Assembly: GCF_001194135.2 (NCBI RefSeq)
Contig: NC_068989.1
Coordinates: 3,273,890-3,337,889 of the forward strand
Direction: 5' to 3'
Length of the DNA: 64,000 bases
Origin: Octopus bimaculoides
Taxonomy: Eukaryota
Numbering within the stretch: position 1 is the first letter of the stretch; each line of letters begins with the position of its first letter. Positions 11,561-61,850 of this stretch are shown piece by piece. Under the pieces are notes generated by a model. That model had not been told where the DNA came from, made no database searches, and worked only from the letters and a program-made list of their open reading frames with translations. Made by a program: the position numbers and the translations under genes.

Positions 11561-11616
11561 GTCTCCGCTGATGAAATATCCCATACCCTAGGATATCCCA
11601 GAAACAGCTGTAAGAC
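11561..11616 (+). ncRNA. Degenerate type-I hammerhead ribozyme motif in a Penelope-like 3' end
   Basis: gtct-ccg-CTGATGA-a-ATATCC..GGATAT-ccca-GAAA with palindromic ACAGCTGT, GUA triplet, then agac. Both helix junctions are imperfect. Confidence 0.55.
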
Positions 11617-12898
11617 TTTGGATTTTTTCCAACACTAATAACGTATATGATTTGAGATGTTTGCCTTGCCTTAACGTTCGTTGTCCTCTTTAATAATTAT
11701 ATAAATATTTTATATAGAGAGATTTGCTATATATATAGAGAGGTGTGGCATATATAGAGAGATATAGCATATATTGATATGATGTAATATAGCTATGTAG
11801 CATACATAGAGATATGGCATATATTAATGTCATACATATAGGAATAGGGTATATATTACTACGGTGTGTATAAATTTTAAACTGCATTTCCGACTAAACA
11901 CTCGCTCAATAATTAAGAATTAATGAGAAAAGGTTGCTGTATATGAATATCTTTTATTTTTTATTGCTTTTGATCATTGGACTGCGGTCAGACTAGAGCA
12001 CAACCCTGAGGGGTTGAGTTGAACAAATCGATGTCTAGTACTTATTCTATCAGTTTCTTTTGTCAAACTACTAAGTTACAGGGATGTAAATAAACCAACA
12101 CTCATTGTCAAGTGTTTGGATGCATAAGCACAAAGATACACACACACACACACACACACACACACACACACACATATATATACTTACACACACACAGAGT
12201 GGGCTTCCACTCAGTTTCCGTTTGTCCAATTCTTCCACAAAGCATTGGTTGGGCTGGGGTTATAGTGGAAGACACTTGTTCCAGGTACTTTACTGTGGGA
12301 CTGAACTTGAAACCATGTGATTACAAAGGGAAATTTCGTGGGTCATTTTGGAATTTGCTTTTCTTTAATCAGTTGGAGATTCAAGCAACAGAGATTATTG
12401 GGAAAAATAATAATAATAATAATATGTTTGATGTGAAATGCTTGTGTGTGTGTATTTATATATANNNNNNNNNNNNNNNNNNNNNNNNNNNNNNNNNNNN
12501 NNNNNNNNNNNNNNNNNNNNNNNNNNNNNNNNNNNNNNNNNNNNNNNNNNNNNNNNNNNNNNNNNNNNNNNNNNNNNNNNNNNNNNNNNNNNNNNNNNNN
12601 NNNNNNNNNNNNNNNNNNNNNNNNNNNNNNNNNNNNNNNNNNNNNNNNNNNNNNNNNNNNNNNNNNNNNNNNNNNNNNNNNNNNNNNNNNNNNNNNNNNN
12701 NNNNNNNNNNNNNNNNNNNNNNNNNNNNNNNNNNNNNNNNNNNNNNNNNNNNNNNNNNNNNNNNNNNNNNNNNNNNNNNNNNNNNNNNNNNNNNNNNNNN
12801 NNNNNNNNNNNNNNNNNNNNNNNNNNNNNNNNNNNNNNNNNNNNNNNNNNNNNNNNNNNNNNNNNNNNNNNNATATATATATATATATATATATATAT

Positions 12899-13265
12899 AT
12901 ACGATGGGCTTCTTTCAGTTTCCATCTACCAAATCCACTCACAAGGCTTTGGTCAGCCTGAAGCTATAGTAGAAGATACTTGCCCAGGGTGCCACAGTGG
13001 GACTGAACCCAGAATTATGTGGTTGGGAAGCAAGCTTCTTATTTCTTCACTGCCCACAAGGGGCTACACACAGTGGGGACGAACAAGGACAGACAAACGG
13101 ATTACGTCGATTATATCGACCCCAGTGCGTAACTGGTACTTATTTAATCGACCCTGAAAGGATGAAAGATAAAGTCAGCCTCGGTGGAATTTGAACTCAG
13201 AATATAGCGGCAGACGAAATACCGCTAAGCATCTCACCTCTCACCACACAGCCCACGCCTGTGCC
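12899..13265 (-). mobile_element. Family A SINE interrupted by a nested family B SINE (about 13043-13232)
   Basis: Family A breaks at gcaagcttctta, family B sequence follows, and A resumes at ccacacagcccacgcctgtgcct. Confidence 0.8.
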
Positions 13266-13294
13266 TATATATATAAATATATATATATATACAC

Positions 13295-13460
13295 ACAGGG
13301 CCAGCTCAAGGTACCAGCAACTCAGGCAGTTACCCGGGGCACCATGTGCTAGTGGGGAACCAAGGAGGGCGTGACAAAGACAAAGAAATTTCCATGACTG
13401 TCAGCTTGTACATGTTGAAGTTAAACTTGCCCGGCACACCACCAACCCTAGGGATAGCCC
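13295..13460. mobile_element. Possible short GC-rich MITE with CAGGGC-type termini
   Basis: Begins cagggccagctc and ends gggatagccctg. A similar GC-rich block lies at about 59835-59970. Confidence 0.35.
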
Positions 13461-58822: not shown

Positions 58823-59215
58823 AGCGGTGAGCTGGCAGAAACGTTAGCACGCCGGGTGAAACGCTTAGAGGTATTTCGTCTGCCGTTACGTTATGAGTTC
58901 AAATTCCGCCGAGGTCGACGTTGTCTTTCATTCTTTCGGGGTCGATAAATTAAGTACCAGTTACGCACTGGGGTCTATATAATCGACTTAATCCTTTTGT
59001 TTGTCCCCTCTGTGTGTAGCCCCTTGTGGGCAGTAAAGAAATAAGAAACGTTAGCACGCCGGGCGAAATACTTGGCGGTATTTCGTCTGTCTTTACGTTC
59101 TGAGTTCAAATTCCGCCAAGTTCAACTTTGCCTTTCATCCTTCCAAGATCGATAAATTAAGTACCAGTTGCGTACTGAGGGTCGACTGGCCTCCTTGTGC
59201 CTAGAGTAGAAAAGA
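58823..59215 (+). mobile_element. SINE family B tandem dimer (young, CpG-rich)
   Basis: Two consecutive units, each starting gaaacgttagcacgccggg. Confidence 0.9.
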
Positions 59216-60653
59216 ATATTCACCGAATGTCCCATTTAATCCATACTTACAACCAAGTGAACTGATTGCAAGTACGTGTACAACTGGAATCACAGGAACA
59301 CAAAACGCAGCAAAATATTATCTGGTCAGCCATTTTGCTACCACCACAACCACTAATACGATCTTGCAGGATATTAAGCTCTAGTTCCATTGTGTTGTTA
59401 TTTAGCTGTCCTCTCAGCACTGACCAGTTCTGTTTGAGCTGCTGATCTTTGTTTAAAGCTGTCCTTGTCCTGACCATATTTTTATATATCTTATAACTGT
59501 TGTCCACTTCAACTGGAGGAGATTTGGCTGCTATGTCTAACTATTAGCAAGATCACATACAGACTCCTATGCTGGTTCATGTTCAGTCCTGGGTACAATT
59601 GCTTGAAAAAAAAAAATAATAATGATAATAATAATGAAAGAACCATTGGGGCCTTTGTGGATTTGAACTGTTGATCAGGACTGACCTAGAGCAAGACAAC
59701 AATAGCAACTTGAATAATGGCCAGAACTAGAATCTGGATCTATTGAGAAATAGGACTTAAAACTGAGAAAATTGTTAGTCTCTGGTCTGACACTGACCAT
59801 TCCCAGATGGGAACCTATTGTTAAATAAATTGGAATCAGGGGTGGACTGAGAGTATTAAGGGCCCCTGGACATAACTGTCTGCCAGGACCCTTTGAATGT
59901 GTGTTTTAGTAGAGTTAACATGTAGAGTGCAGACCCCTCAGATCTCTGGGCCCTCAGGCAGTGCCCAATTGATCGATAATTAAGCAGACAAGTCAATAAG
60001 GGAACCTCTCTGTTAGAAATAGCAACCAAATCCTACAAATAAAATAAAAGACCAGAAGACAAGATGATCAGAGCTGCAACATATTTCATCCTTAAGTGTG
60101 CTGGGTCCAGGCTGACCTGGGGCTAAACAACAACAAATGACCGATCAATAATCCTGCTCGATCAGCTTAGTTCGTTAAGGAGGCGGCGTTGGTGCAGGAT
60201 TTGATAATAGATAAGTAATAATTGCTTCGTTAAAGAGTTTACTTTGGCCAAGCTGTTTATTATATCAAAACAATGCAGTTTATTCTAAGCAGTTGAACTT
60301 AATGATAAATAGACAATAGAAGAACACAAAGAATTTCCTTTTTACTTTCTCTTATATTTATGTATTTATTTTTGGTAACTGAAAATTAATGAGCCAGAAT
60401 TATTTGTTAATGTAAGGAGACACAAAGAAAATGTCCTTCATTCAGAATCTTACAAGGAACATAGATCTTTTGGCCACTTATCAGAAACTGGTACAAGATT
60501 GTCTGGTGGTGGTGTTTTTGAAAGAGTGGCATTCATTCCTATCCAAATCTCTCATTAACATAATATTAAGAAAACAGTTAAGTTAAGCACCACCCCTTAA
60601 AAGCTGTTCTCATATCTCACTTCTATGAATTAGGGCTGCAGTTTCCAATTATT

Positions 60654-60726
60654 GTCTTAATAACTGATGAGATGCCGGAGCAGAATTCTACCCCCACATC
60701 CGAAACTCTGAGTTTTATTATGGCAA
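60654..60726 (+). ncRNA. Type-I hammerhead ribozyme with intact catalytic core, GUU triplet
   Basis: TAATAA-CTGATGA-GATG..agaattct..CATC-C-GAAA, helix III ACTC-T-GAGT, U17 at 60714, TTATTA pairing with TAATAA, with further pairing beyond. Confidence 0.8.
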
Positions 60727-61429
60727 CCGAATAATTGTCACATATTATATTATATATATATATATATATATTTTCAGAAGTCAAACACATATAGTAATAA
60801 ACAAATGGATGGAAAGATATACTAAATGCATTGAATGCACAGATGAATGGAGAACAAACACTGGTCACAAATTCCTAATCAGCTATCAGTGAAGGTGTCA
60901 TGTGCAATTTCATACCATTATCGATAATATTGCATCCACCCTGGAGGCAACCAGCAAGAGAATTTGCTGGGAATGCGACCAAAACATAATAAAACAAGAT
61001 GGACAAACAAGGAGGAACAATAGACGAAAGAAAATAAATGAAATAAGCAGAATATGGCCTTAGGGTTAGGTGAAGACAAAAAAAAAAAAAAAAATTATAC
61101 ATATACAACAAAAAAAATCTGTGGGTTAGCAGACAGACAAGTGTGGAGTAATGCAAAGGAGAATGAGAACTGAGAGGACTCAAACAAACACAAGAGAAAG
61201 GTAGAGTGAAGAATTCAGATAAATATGACGGATTGGTTCAAAGGCATTGCAAAAAGTGAATGACACTGCATTAGATTGTGACCAACCAGATGGTAGTGGG
61301 AGGAAAAGTCAGAGGAGAGAAAGGGAGAGAAGAAAGGAAGGTGAAAGAAAGGAAAGAGACAGATTAGAGTTGCACAAAAAAATATCCCAAAAAATATTTC
61401 TGAAACAAGTAAAAGAATAAAAAAGTATT

Positions 61430-61850
61430 TCGTTTTTGGATTTGGTTTGCAAGATTTTTTATGTGATTTCGTGTGTTGAAGCATATTCTGTTGTGTCTGG
61501 GGAGAGTCATTTTCTTTTCGTGCCTTAAAATTTTAGGAAAATAAAAAATTTTAAAAAATAATAAGTGGAAATTTTAATGGTGAGTGTGTTAAATTTTAAG
61601 GCACGATAAGAAAATGACTCTCCCCAGACACAACAGAATAAAAAAGTAAGCCGCCATAATTGACCACTAGCTCCAAAGTTTTTGTTTTTACTATCTCTCT
61701 GTTTATTTCCTTGTGTTCCTTTCTGTTGAAGAGCGTAAGCTCGAAACGTAAAAGACTTTCTCACCTTCCCGAGCGTTAAACTAATACACCTGTTTGCTGT
61801 TTATACACCTGTCTTCGTCTTTTGTTTTTCTATAAATTTCAACTATATAT
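61430..61850 (+). mobile_element. Fold-back element (same family as 21781-21985) continuing into a Penelope-like tail
   Basis: About 50-bp arms near 61485-61533 and 61590-61638, then a hammerhead motif and a pyrimidine-rich tail ending in (TA)n. Confidence 0.75.
61719..61754 (+). ncRNA. 36-nt minimal hammerhead motif (A6U variant), GUA triplet
   Basis: CTTT-CTGTTGA-A-GAGC gtaa GCTC-GAAA-CGT-A-AAAG: perfect helix II with GNRA loop, ACGT palindrome, 4-bp helix I. Confidence 0.65.

Follow-up and report, generated by a model that had tools for sequence, protein, structure and literature searches.

Minimal hammerhead ribozymes were described in 2014 in Penelope-like elements (PLEs) and, scattered by the thousands, in metazoan genomes (Cervera & De la Pena, PMC4209133). 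In these, the nucleotide after A9 is unpaired, G10.1-C11.1 is a conserved pair, helix II typically has 6-8 bp, helix I has 4-5 bp and helix III is palindromic or absent (PMC4209133); their cleavage as dimers is reported to have been shown by Lunse, Weinberg & Breaker 2017 (cited in PMC6765202). The insertions of PLEs are recognised by target duplications that vary in length, by a 5'-truncated partner copy lying inverted at the 5' end and by a one-sided tail of 30-40 bp, which is not seen in the target-primed reverse transcription of the long interspersed nuclear element (LINE) type, and they are biased to microsatellites such as (TA)n (PMC8557442). Here, we analysed a 64,000-nt stretch of the Octopus bimaculoides genome (assembly GCF_001194135.2, contig NC_068989.1, forward-strand positions 3,273,890 to 3,337,889; hereafter the window), in which a first-pass annotation had pointed to a series of hammerhead motifs within repeats. 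We find that the window probably holds decayed relics of minimal type-I hammerheads of the PLE kind, located near the 3' ends of several short non-coding retroelements.

That animal hammerhead repeats may be non-autonomous derivatives of PLEs has been put forward before (bioRxiv 10.64898/2026.07.22.740005; PMC4209133). PLEs have been reported in octopus and squid, and for the giant squid genome 235 matches to the Rfam hammerhead have been reported (PMC13282606, PMC6962438). The metazoan retrozymes, which are known in molluscs and number about 5000 copies in mussel, have target duplications of more than 4 bp and are proposed to be mobilised by PLEs (PMC7229834); their origin from the pseudo-long terminal repeats (pseudo-LTRs) of PLEs has also been proposed (bioRxiv 10.64898/2026.07.22.740005). 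The elements of the window resemble the non-LTR retrozymes in being short, AT-rich, non-coding retroelements with type-I hammerheads (PMC7229834). They differ in that no motif lies in head-to-tail tandem repeats of 150-450 nt, and no long-period tandem array was found at any of them by Tandem Repeats Finder run with published retrozyme-pipeline parameters. We examined the following motifs, given with a position-and-strand name used below:

11561 to 11616, plus strand: hammerhead-like motif with an exact core and misplaced helices (11568+; gucu ccg CUGAUGA a AUAUCC(9 nt)GGAUAU ccca GAAA CAGCUGU A agac)

24287 to 24374, plus strand: hammerhead-like motif with U4 changed to C (24292+; caucu CcGAAGA GCGGA(49 nt)UCCGC GAAA CGAUCGU C agaug)

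29812 to 29857, minus strand: hammerhead relic, copy 1 (29852-; gacac CUGAUGA a GGCUG..CAGgu GAAA CaU U guguu)

30111 to 30156, plus strand: hammerhead relic, copy 2 (30116+; gacac CUGAUaA a GGCUG(10 nt)CAGCC aAAA uGU U guguu)

41922 to 41966, minus strand: hammerhead-like motif (41960-; ucugag CUGAUGA a GGG AAAUAA CCC a GAAA UCGUGAU A cacaga)

44275 to 44308, minus strand: deleted relative of the 11568+ motif (44.28k-; GUCUCCG-GAAAUAUCC-ug-GAAACAGCUGUA-AGAC)

60646 to 60737, plus strand: hammerhead-like motif (60664+; uaauaa CUGAUGA GAUG(22 nt)CAUC c GAAA CUCUGAGU U uuauua)

61719 to 61754, plus strand: compact minimal hammerhead of 36 nt with A6 changed to U (61723+; cuuu CUGuUGA a GAGC GUAA GCUC GAAA CGU A aaag)

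All eight places hold the strings described by the first-pass annotation, which had listed seven CUGANGA..GAAA motifs and a deleted remnant, but the exact CUGANGA box is present in only four of the seven (11568+, 29852-, 41960- and 60664+). The remaining three carry core substitutions, namely CCGAAGA in 24292+ (U4 to C), CUGUUGA in 61723+ (A6 to U) and CUGAUAA...AAAA in 30116+ (G8 to A and G12 to A). These substituted copies fit the descriptor of the Penelope-type minimal hammerhead with one or two invariant core bases changed, and the exact-core copies each have a spacer, a bulge or a mismatch at the junction of helix II with G12. An unpaired nucleotide stands between A9 and 10.1 in 29852-/30116+, 61723+, 41960- and 11568+, and there is none in 24292+ and 60664+; the G10.1-C11.1 closing pair is present in 24292+, 30116+, 61723+ and 60664+. 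As to the length of helix II, 24292+ has 5+6 bp interrupted by a bulge, 30116+ has 5-6 bp, 61723+ has 4 bp, 60664+ has 4 bp plus an extension, 41960- has only 3 bp and 11568+ has 6 bp displaced by 4 nt. The palindromes proposed for helix III stood up in four cases (ACAGCUGU, ACGAUCGU, ACUCUGAGU and ACGU), and the pair at 29.8k/30.1k has ACAU and AUGU, the CA/TG double CpG decay of ACGU; AUCGUGAU, however, is self-complementary only with two G.U pairs. The palindromic positions 15.2-16.2/loop 3, the feature of a dimer-forming helix III, are present as in the PLE-type minimal hammerheads. As every present copy has at least one disabling defect, we read the motifs as fossils and not as working ribozymes, and "relic load" should replace the "ribozyme load" of the first-pass annotation, which had called the elements ribozyme-bearing.

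The motifs share with the PLE minimal hammerheads the type-I order and a helix I of 4-6 bp and, in part of the copies, exact CUGANGA/GAAA boxes, the extra nucleotide between A9 and 10.1 and the G10.1-C11.1 pair. Likewise, helix III is very short or absent and a palindrome takes its place, which would imply action as a dimer, and the motifs are mostly scattered and single, with some close pairs on opposite strands. In contrast to the PLE hammerheads, no copy in the window lies in a pseudo-LTR flanking an open reading frame (ORF) for reverse transcriptase or GIY-YIG nuclease (among ORFs of 75 aa or more), each copy is marred either by a core substitution or by a defect at the helix II junction, and two motifs have unusually long helix II loops (49 nt and 22 nt).

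The strongest case among the motifs is the 29.8k/30.1k pair, which lies in the following insertion, termed element A:

29771 to 30226: element A, a 456-bp retro-insertion of two head-to-head copies resembling a short interspersed nuclear element (SINE)

29771 to 30005, minus strand: full-length unit of element A, about 235 nt (nhmmer)

29993 to 30226, plus strand: inverted copy of element A, 5'-truncated by about 31 nt (nhmmer, matching unit positions 32-234)

On either side of element A, the same 14 bp, TAAAAAGTGTCTTA, stand as an exact direct repeat (29757-29770 and 30227-30240). The region 29768-30200 is self-reverse-complementary at 86%, and the two copies belong to one unit and are 92% identical to each other. 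The head of the unit contains a degenerate tRNA-like cloverleaf (29924-29988; found by ARAGORN at 80% of its threshold, with none at the default), and among the motif-bearing elements only element A has the features of a tRNA-derived SINE, namely the tRNA-like head, the 235-nt unit and the 14-bp duplication. The plus-strand copy alone has an extra 29-nt 3' tail (30198-30226). The insertion site is not (TA)n. The hammerhead motif sits 46 nt from the 3' end of the unit.

The tail contains TTCCTCATCT. Read on the opposite strand, this is AGATGAGGAA, a sequence similar to part of the 3' region of the unit itself, which reads AAGATGAGGACAA in the minus-strand copy and AAGAGGAGGACAA in the tailed copy, about 45 nt upstream. 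The tail could have arisen as a small snap-back copy.

We then compared the two hammerhead copies of element A. Copy 1 has an exact core and a helix I of 5 bp (GACAC/GUGUU), with a mutated 3' strand of helix II (CAGGU against CAGCC in its partner) and a helix III changed from ACGU to ACAU. Copy 2 has an intact helix II (GGCUG/CAGCC) with the G10.1-C11.1 pair and an unpaired A ahead of it, the core changes G8A and G12A, and a minimum-energy fold that consists of helices I and II. The copies repair each other, in that G8 and G12 are intact in 29852- and the CAGCC strand is intact in 30116+. At two sites one copy has TG where the other has CA, the well-known pair of outcomes of CpG decay; resolving one of them restores C11.1-G12 and resolving the other restores ACGU. 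Across the window, which is AT-rich (38% G+C), CpG has an observed/expected ratio of 0.43, and TpG and CpA have one of about 1.27; this strong CpG depletion with an excess of TpG/CpA implies germline DNA methylation, which accounts for the TG/CA differences between repeat copies. The ancestor reconstructed from the two copies would be GACAC CUGAUGA A GGCUG(10 nt)CAGCC GAAA CGU U GUGUU, a canonical minimal hammerhead of the PLE type, and it is predicted to fold into helices I and II. If one may choose between the two bases wherever the copies differ, the alignment admits an exact canonical hammerhead of the minimal type, which none of 20,000 column shuffles achieved.

Element A has a 14-bp duplication, an inverted 5'-truncated partner and a one-sided 29-nt tail, which together are insertion features of the Penelope-like kind; it is therefore a SINE-like retroelement with an ancestral hammerhead, most likely inserted by PLE enzymes. 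It does not have the build of a miniature inverted-repeat transposable element (MITE) derived from a DNA transposon, as shown by the 14-bp duplication, the asymmetric arms and the tail, and no cut-and-paste superfamily known to us duplicates 14 bp of its target. The first-pass annotation had named uniform DNA-transposon duplications of 2-9 bp, with a cognate transposase, as the mark of a different origin; the duplication of element A is 14 bp, and no transposase ORF was found in a Pfam scan of the window ORFs of at least 75 aa. Element A has likenesses to the SINE-like retroposons Sm-alpha/Sj-alpha of schistosomes, in its tRNA-like head, type-I hammerhead and length of about 235 nt (PMC6765202). 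The hammerhead of Sm-alpha is canonical and active, with loop-loop contacts, and Sm-alpha occurs in tandem arrays, whereas element A has the minimal PLE type, its motif stands 46 nt from the 3' end and its copies are inverted and both inactivated.

We examined whether the motifs exceed chance. The CUGANGA box alone is at chance level (33 boxes on both strands against about 31 expected). A palindrome test, in which an exact CUGANGA was followed by 4-70 nt, GAA and a self-complementary 8-10-mer of the form A..U plus H, found five loci, against a mean of 0.39 in 300 dinucleotide shuffles, none of which reached five. Since shuffling destroys genuine palindromes, decoy boxes were tried on the real sequence. 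With 180 composition-matched decoys for the first box, CUGANGA came out on top, its 5 loci comparing with a decoy mean of 0.29 and maximum of 2; with 64 triplets for the second box, so did GAA (5 loci, decoy mean 0.23). No locus was found in the reversed sequence. The PLE descriptor, built on the published features of the minimal hammerhead, among them the unpaired post-A9 nucleotide and the G10.1-C11.1 pair, gave four loci with up to two core mismatches (24292+, 61723+, 30116+ and 55504-). With up to one mismatch, 24292+ and 61723+ remained, two loci where shuffles gave 0.09 and decoys 0.16, a count reached in none of 100 shuffles and one of 89 decoys. The palindrome test and the one-mismatch descriptor test have no locus in common. 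In summary, these results support the view that the motifs are non-random and, in at least some contexts, derived from hammerheads.

Two candidates were rejected. The palindrome-test locus 9700- is a false positive, in which CTGATGA encodes the YSDD box of a LINE reverse transcriptase, and as a single false positive it agrees with the expected rate. The descriptor locus 55504- (55452-55509, minus strand; CUAACGA ... GUAA, two core mismatches) is probably noise and lies within the chance number.

The sole match to the Rfam model Hammerhead_1 (RF00163) is at 24286-24375. It covers the full model (1-45) and aligns end to end, including GAAACG..CGUC and helix I, with a score of 15.2 bits against the gathering threshold of 34, and the other loci score nothing. 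Its E value is 0.55 in 191 nt, which when scaled corresponds to about 0.04 such matches expected per window for one family. The predicted fold of 24287-24374 retains helices I and II, and this locus also matches the descriptors.

Two further fold-back structures enclose motifs, 24292+ and 41960-, respectively:

23838 to 24626: element B, a fold-back with arms at 23838-23988 (minus strand) and 24482-24626 (plus strand)

41755 to 42243: element C, with its main copy on the minus strand (42077 to 41755) and an inverted 5'-truncated copy on the plus strand (42084-42243)

The arms of element B are about 150 nt long and about 97% identical, and its unique core of about 490 nt contains the 24292+ motif. 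Both flanks are (AT)7 (23825-23838 and 24627-24640), and the target duplication is therefore ambiguous. In element C, the 41960- motif has an exact core, a helix I with five of six pairs and a 3-bp helix II flanked by an A/A mismatch. The inverted copy corresponds to main-copy positions 157-317. Its start matches position 41921, which lies on the 3' side of the predicted cleavage site (41928|41927) at a distance of 6-7 nt. This proximity is suggestive, as a single case; if other copies of element C also start there, it would be in vivo evidence that cleaved RNA serves as a template. No target duplication was found for element C. An inverted 5'-truncated copy adjoining a longer copy is common to elements A, B and C, and the arms of B and C repeat only the region 3' of the motif, on the motif strand, as in element A. 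A Penelope origin of the 24.2k and 42.0k fold-backs is plausible.

The remaining motifs lie outside such fold-backs. The 60664+ motif has an exact core, a perfect 6-bp helix I beside it and a further 8-bp extension of helix I (CAAUUAUU/AAUAAUUG). An imperfect hairpin of 30 nt forms its helix II, with an additional C ahead of G12, its palindrome is 9 nt long, and a (TA)10 tract (60751-60771) starts 37 nt past the predicted cleavage site. In the 61723+ motif, which has one core mismatch, an extra nucleotide follows A9, helix II has 4 bp with the G10.1-C11.1 pair and a GNRA cap, and ACGU is the palindrome. A search for target duplications of the 60.66k and 61.72k elements found none. The weakest exact-core case is 11568+, in which a 4-nt spacer ahead of G12 and a 3-nt spacer ahead of C3 displace helices I and II from the core. 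Its deleted relative 44.28k- has blocks of 7, 9 and 16 nt, including GAAACAGCUGUAAGAC, in common with 11561-11616, lacks CUGAU and half of the hairpin, and has CA against TG ahead of GAAAC, a CpG-decay pair; (TA)n is found at 44167-44204, about 70 nt downstream of it.

The repeat contexts described in the first-pass annotation were borne out in part. It had placed five motifs in or beside inverted repeats: 24292, 29852, 30116 and 41960 are inside them, but 61723 lies outside its neighbouring hairpin (61484-61640), which is an unrelated TA-flanked MITE, and no inverted partner was found for 60664, 11568 and 44280. Tracts of at least five TA units lie within 270 nt downstream of four of the eight motifs, a mild enrichment (random-position P = 0.128, binomial about 0.012). 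The count of six repeat contexts is not supported: for only two of them does the window hold a second copy, and blastn and nhmmer found no further in-window copies beyond the inverted partners. The proposal that the apparent MITEs were mobilised by Penelope enzymes is carried by element A, with its duplication, partner and tail, and fails for the neighbour of the 61.72k motif, a true DNA MITE. The genome-wide load is an extrapolation from about one motif per 9 kb, which the first-pass wording overstates. In summary, the first-pass interpretation is partly supported, being right in outline for at least one family.

The insertion of element A touches a host gene of the window:

27619 to 27846 and about 30242 to 30340, minus strand: SH3 domain (Pfam SH3_1) of a host gene, split over two exons

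Element A lies 15 nt inside the intron between these exons, by the splice donor and on the strand of the gene, and its 14-bp duplication copies intron bases +2 to +15. A protein search with the SH3 exon gave no match.

In the process that we favour, the elements would first be transcribed; in element A, the tRNA-like head would probably serve RNA polymerase III as the promoter. Two motifs would then pair through the palindromic helix III and be cut after position 17, a behaviour established for PLE hammerheads from other sources. A PLE reverse transcriptase with its GIY-YIG nickase, presumably supplied in trans, would copy the RNA at a nicked target, often (TA)n. This step would duplicate a target stretch of varying length and leave a short one-sided tail and, in many cases, a 5'-truncated partner copy in inverted orientation, marks that are seen in element A. 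Finally, the copies would decay by CpG transitions and small indels, and both kinds of change are seen here.

Several results weigh against reading the motifs as PLE-derived relics. An intact core with three abutting helices occurs in no present copy and only in the reconstructed ancestor of element A. No Rfam hammerhead was found in the whole window, either at the gathering threshold (34 bits) or at E ≤ 10, and local Rfam scans (100-400 nt, E ≤ 10) gave none at 41.96k, 60.66k, 11.57k, 61.72k and 29.8-30.1k. The strict canonical type-I descriptor, in which helix II abuts A9 and G12, A15.1-U16.1 pair, position 17 is H and helix I abuts C3, had no exact-core match in the window; with one core mismatch, only 24292+ stands out, at a level seen in 3% of shuffles. 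Predicted folding energies cannot be told apart from those of shuffles (z = +0.7 to -1.7). The descriptor thresholds were set post hoc, with the data already seen; the decoy-box controls are independent of them. Four contexts are single-copy in the window, and no ORF for a Penelope reverse transcriptase or GIY-YIG nuclease was found by Pfam among window ORFs of at least 75 aa. Elements B and C have no informative target duplication and may be DNA fold-back elements, and in the 11.57k/44.28k family the CUGAUGA box may not be ancestral.

These points bear first on the question of whether the motifs are simply strings resembling hammerheads that were picked by eye in AT-rich, repeat-laden DNA. 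The chance frequency of the box, the absence of an Rfam match at threshold and of an exact-core match to the strict descriptor, the unremarkable folding scores, the coding nature of 9700- and the noise-like 55504- are all what chance would give. Taken alone, the null result of the strict descriptor would point to chance, a reading opposed by the decoy-box tests and by the descriptor that allows for the published post-A9 nucleotide. The decoy-box, shuffle and reversed controls put the real box pair far above background, the ancestor test with the two copies of element A gave 0/20,000, and the post-A9 nucleotide, the G10.1-C11.1 pair and the palindromic helix III recur although the first test did not require them. 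Hence, we consider chance an improbable explanation. A somewhat less improbable, but still unlikely, explanation concerns elements B and C, which could be cut-and-paste derivatives of DNA transposons, either MITEs with long terminal inverted repeats (TIRs) or foldback elements, in which the hammerhead-like strings are incidental. The near-identical TIRs of about 150 nt around a unique core in B, its (TA)n flanks, which suit a TA target as in Tc1/mariner, the presence in the window of a genuine TA-flanked hairpin MITE family (21.8k and 61.5k) and the lack of an unambiguous long target duplication in B or C fit this origin. However, the arms of B and C duplicate only the part 3' of the motif on the motif strand, which is the PLE pattern of a full and an inverted truncated copy, the truncated copy of C has its start 6-7 nt away from where cleavage is predicted, element A, whose architecture is the same, shows a target duplication of 14 bp, and no transposase ORF was found among window ORFs of at least 75 aa.

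It is also possible, although we doubt it, that the 24.29k, 60.66k, 61.72k and 11.57k motifs are 5'-truncated ends or solo pseudo-LTRs of autonomous PLEs, and not parts of dedicated non-autonomous families. PLE insertions are mostly strongly 5'-truncated, and most genomic minimal hammerheads are single and thought to be truncated PLEs (PMC4209133, PMC8557442). For these four motifs, neither a 5' boundary nor a head nor a second copy can be recognised in the window. The tRNA-like head and the defined 235-nt length of element A argue that at least one family is SINE-like, and no PLE coding remnant was found beside any motif among the window ORFs of at least 75 aa. By far the least probable explanation is that one or more motifs are working host ribozymes, such as an intronic hammerhead acting on the pre-mRNA of the SH3-domain gene. 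It would draw on the location of element A, 15 nt into the intron beside the splice donor on the gene strand, and on the conserved intronic hammerheads of amniotes (cited in PMC7229834). Against it, both copies of element A are changed at G8, G12 or helix II and show CpG decay, which is the pattern of neutral drift. In summary, decayed PLE-kind hammerheads in short retroelements remain the probable reading. More speculatively, a SINE-PLE partnership may be envisaged, in which a SINE family with a tRNA promoter carries a minimal hammerhead 46 nt from its 3' end and is inserted by PLE enzymes, with the inverted truncated partner and the one-sided tail as its marks; short elements with minimal hammerheads could then be among the commonest repeats of the genome, with relics of the order of 10^5, almost all of them invisible to Rfam. 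We offer this extension tentatively and expect it rather to fail than to hold.

Density estimates are based on the 60,882 non-N bases of the window. None of its nine N runs overlaps a motif or its element, the nearest (12465) being 850 nt from the 11.57k motif; gap continuity therefore bears on the density estimates alone. Besides the N runs, the window is crowded with microsatellites and SINE copies. The "perfect 430-nt inverted repeats" that a repeat finder reported at 12465-12894 and 50734-51163 are an artefact of N runs beside (TA)n, and an (ATT)n/(ATC)n microsatellite, some 600 bp long, extends across a 10-N gap at 18959-19560. Two SINE families are abundant: the first has a tRNA-like head and at least 15 copies (e.g. 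41616-41770, 22304-22453, 52184-52293 and 4341-4479), and the second has a 3' end ...CCATGCCAGCATGGAAAACGGACGTTAAA followed by (TGA)n (28195-28289, 32353-32447 and 40573-40667). A hammerhead-like motif is absent from both. Two further features were annotated:

9642 to 10212, minus strand: LINE-type reverse-transcriptase fragment (Pfam RVT_1)

21756 to 21963 and 61484 to 61640: hairpin MITE family of the Tc1/mariner type, with TIRs ...TTGTGYCTGGGGAGAGTCATT... and TA on both flanks

The MITE family gives spurious Rfam matches to plant miRNAs (MIR2606 and MIR169_8). The closest database relative of the reverse-transcriptase fragment is a 586-bp contig labelled E. coli, probably assembly contamination, and a protein search with this fragment gave two matches, both irrelevant. 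The Pfam scan of window ORFs of at least 75 aa found only this RVT_1 fragment and the SH3 domain. Exact-pattern searches of metagenome, genome and viral contig collections with an element B arm and with a motif of the abundant SINEs gave no matches, and neither did a look-up of contigs by exact ORF.

The current picture of what these ribozymes are is unchanged by our findings. Hammerheads in PLEs and their non-autonomous offspring are very numerous in many animals and have been counted mainly with intact-core descriptors or Rfam models. The window suggests that, in a repeat-rich and CpG-depleted genome, most such motifs are decayed and missed by those counts, and that the ancestral ribozyme can be reconstructed where two paralogous copies are compared. 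Element A offers a clean, dated-looking short element of the polymerase-III type with Penelope-style insertion scars, which makes it useful for studying the action of PLEs in trans. If the relics described here are typical, Rfam-based counts would overlook nearly all of them.

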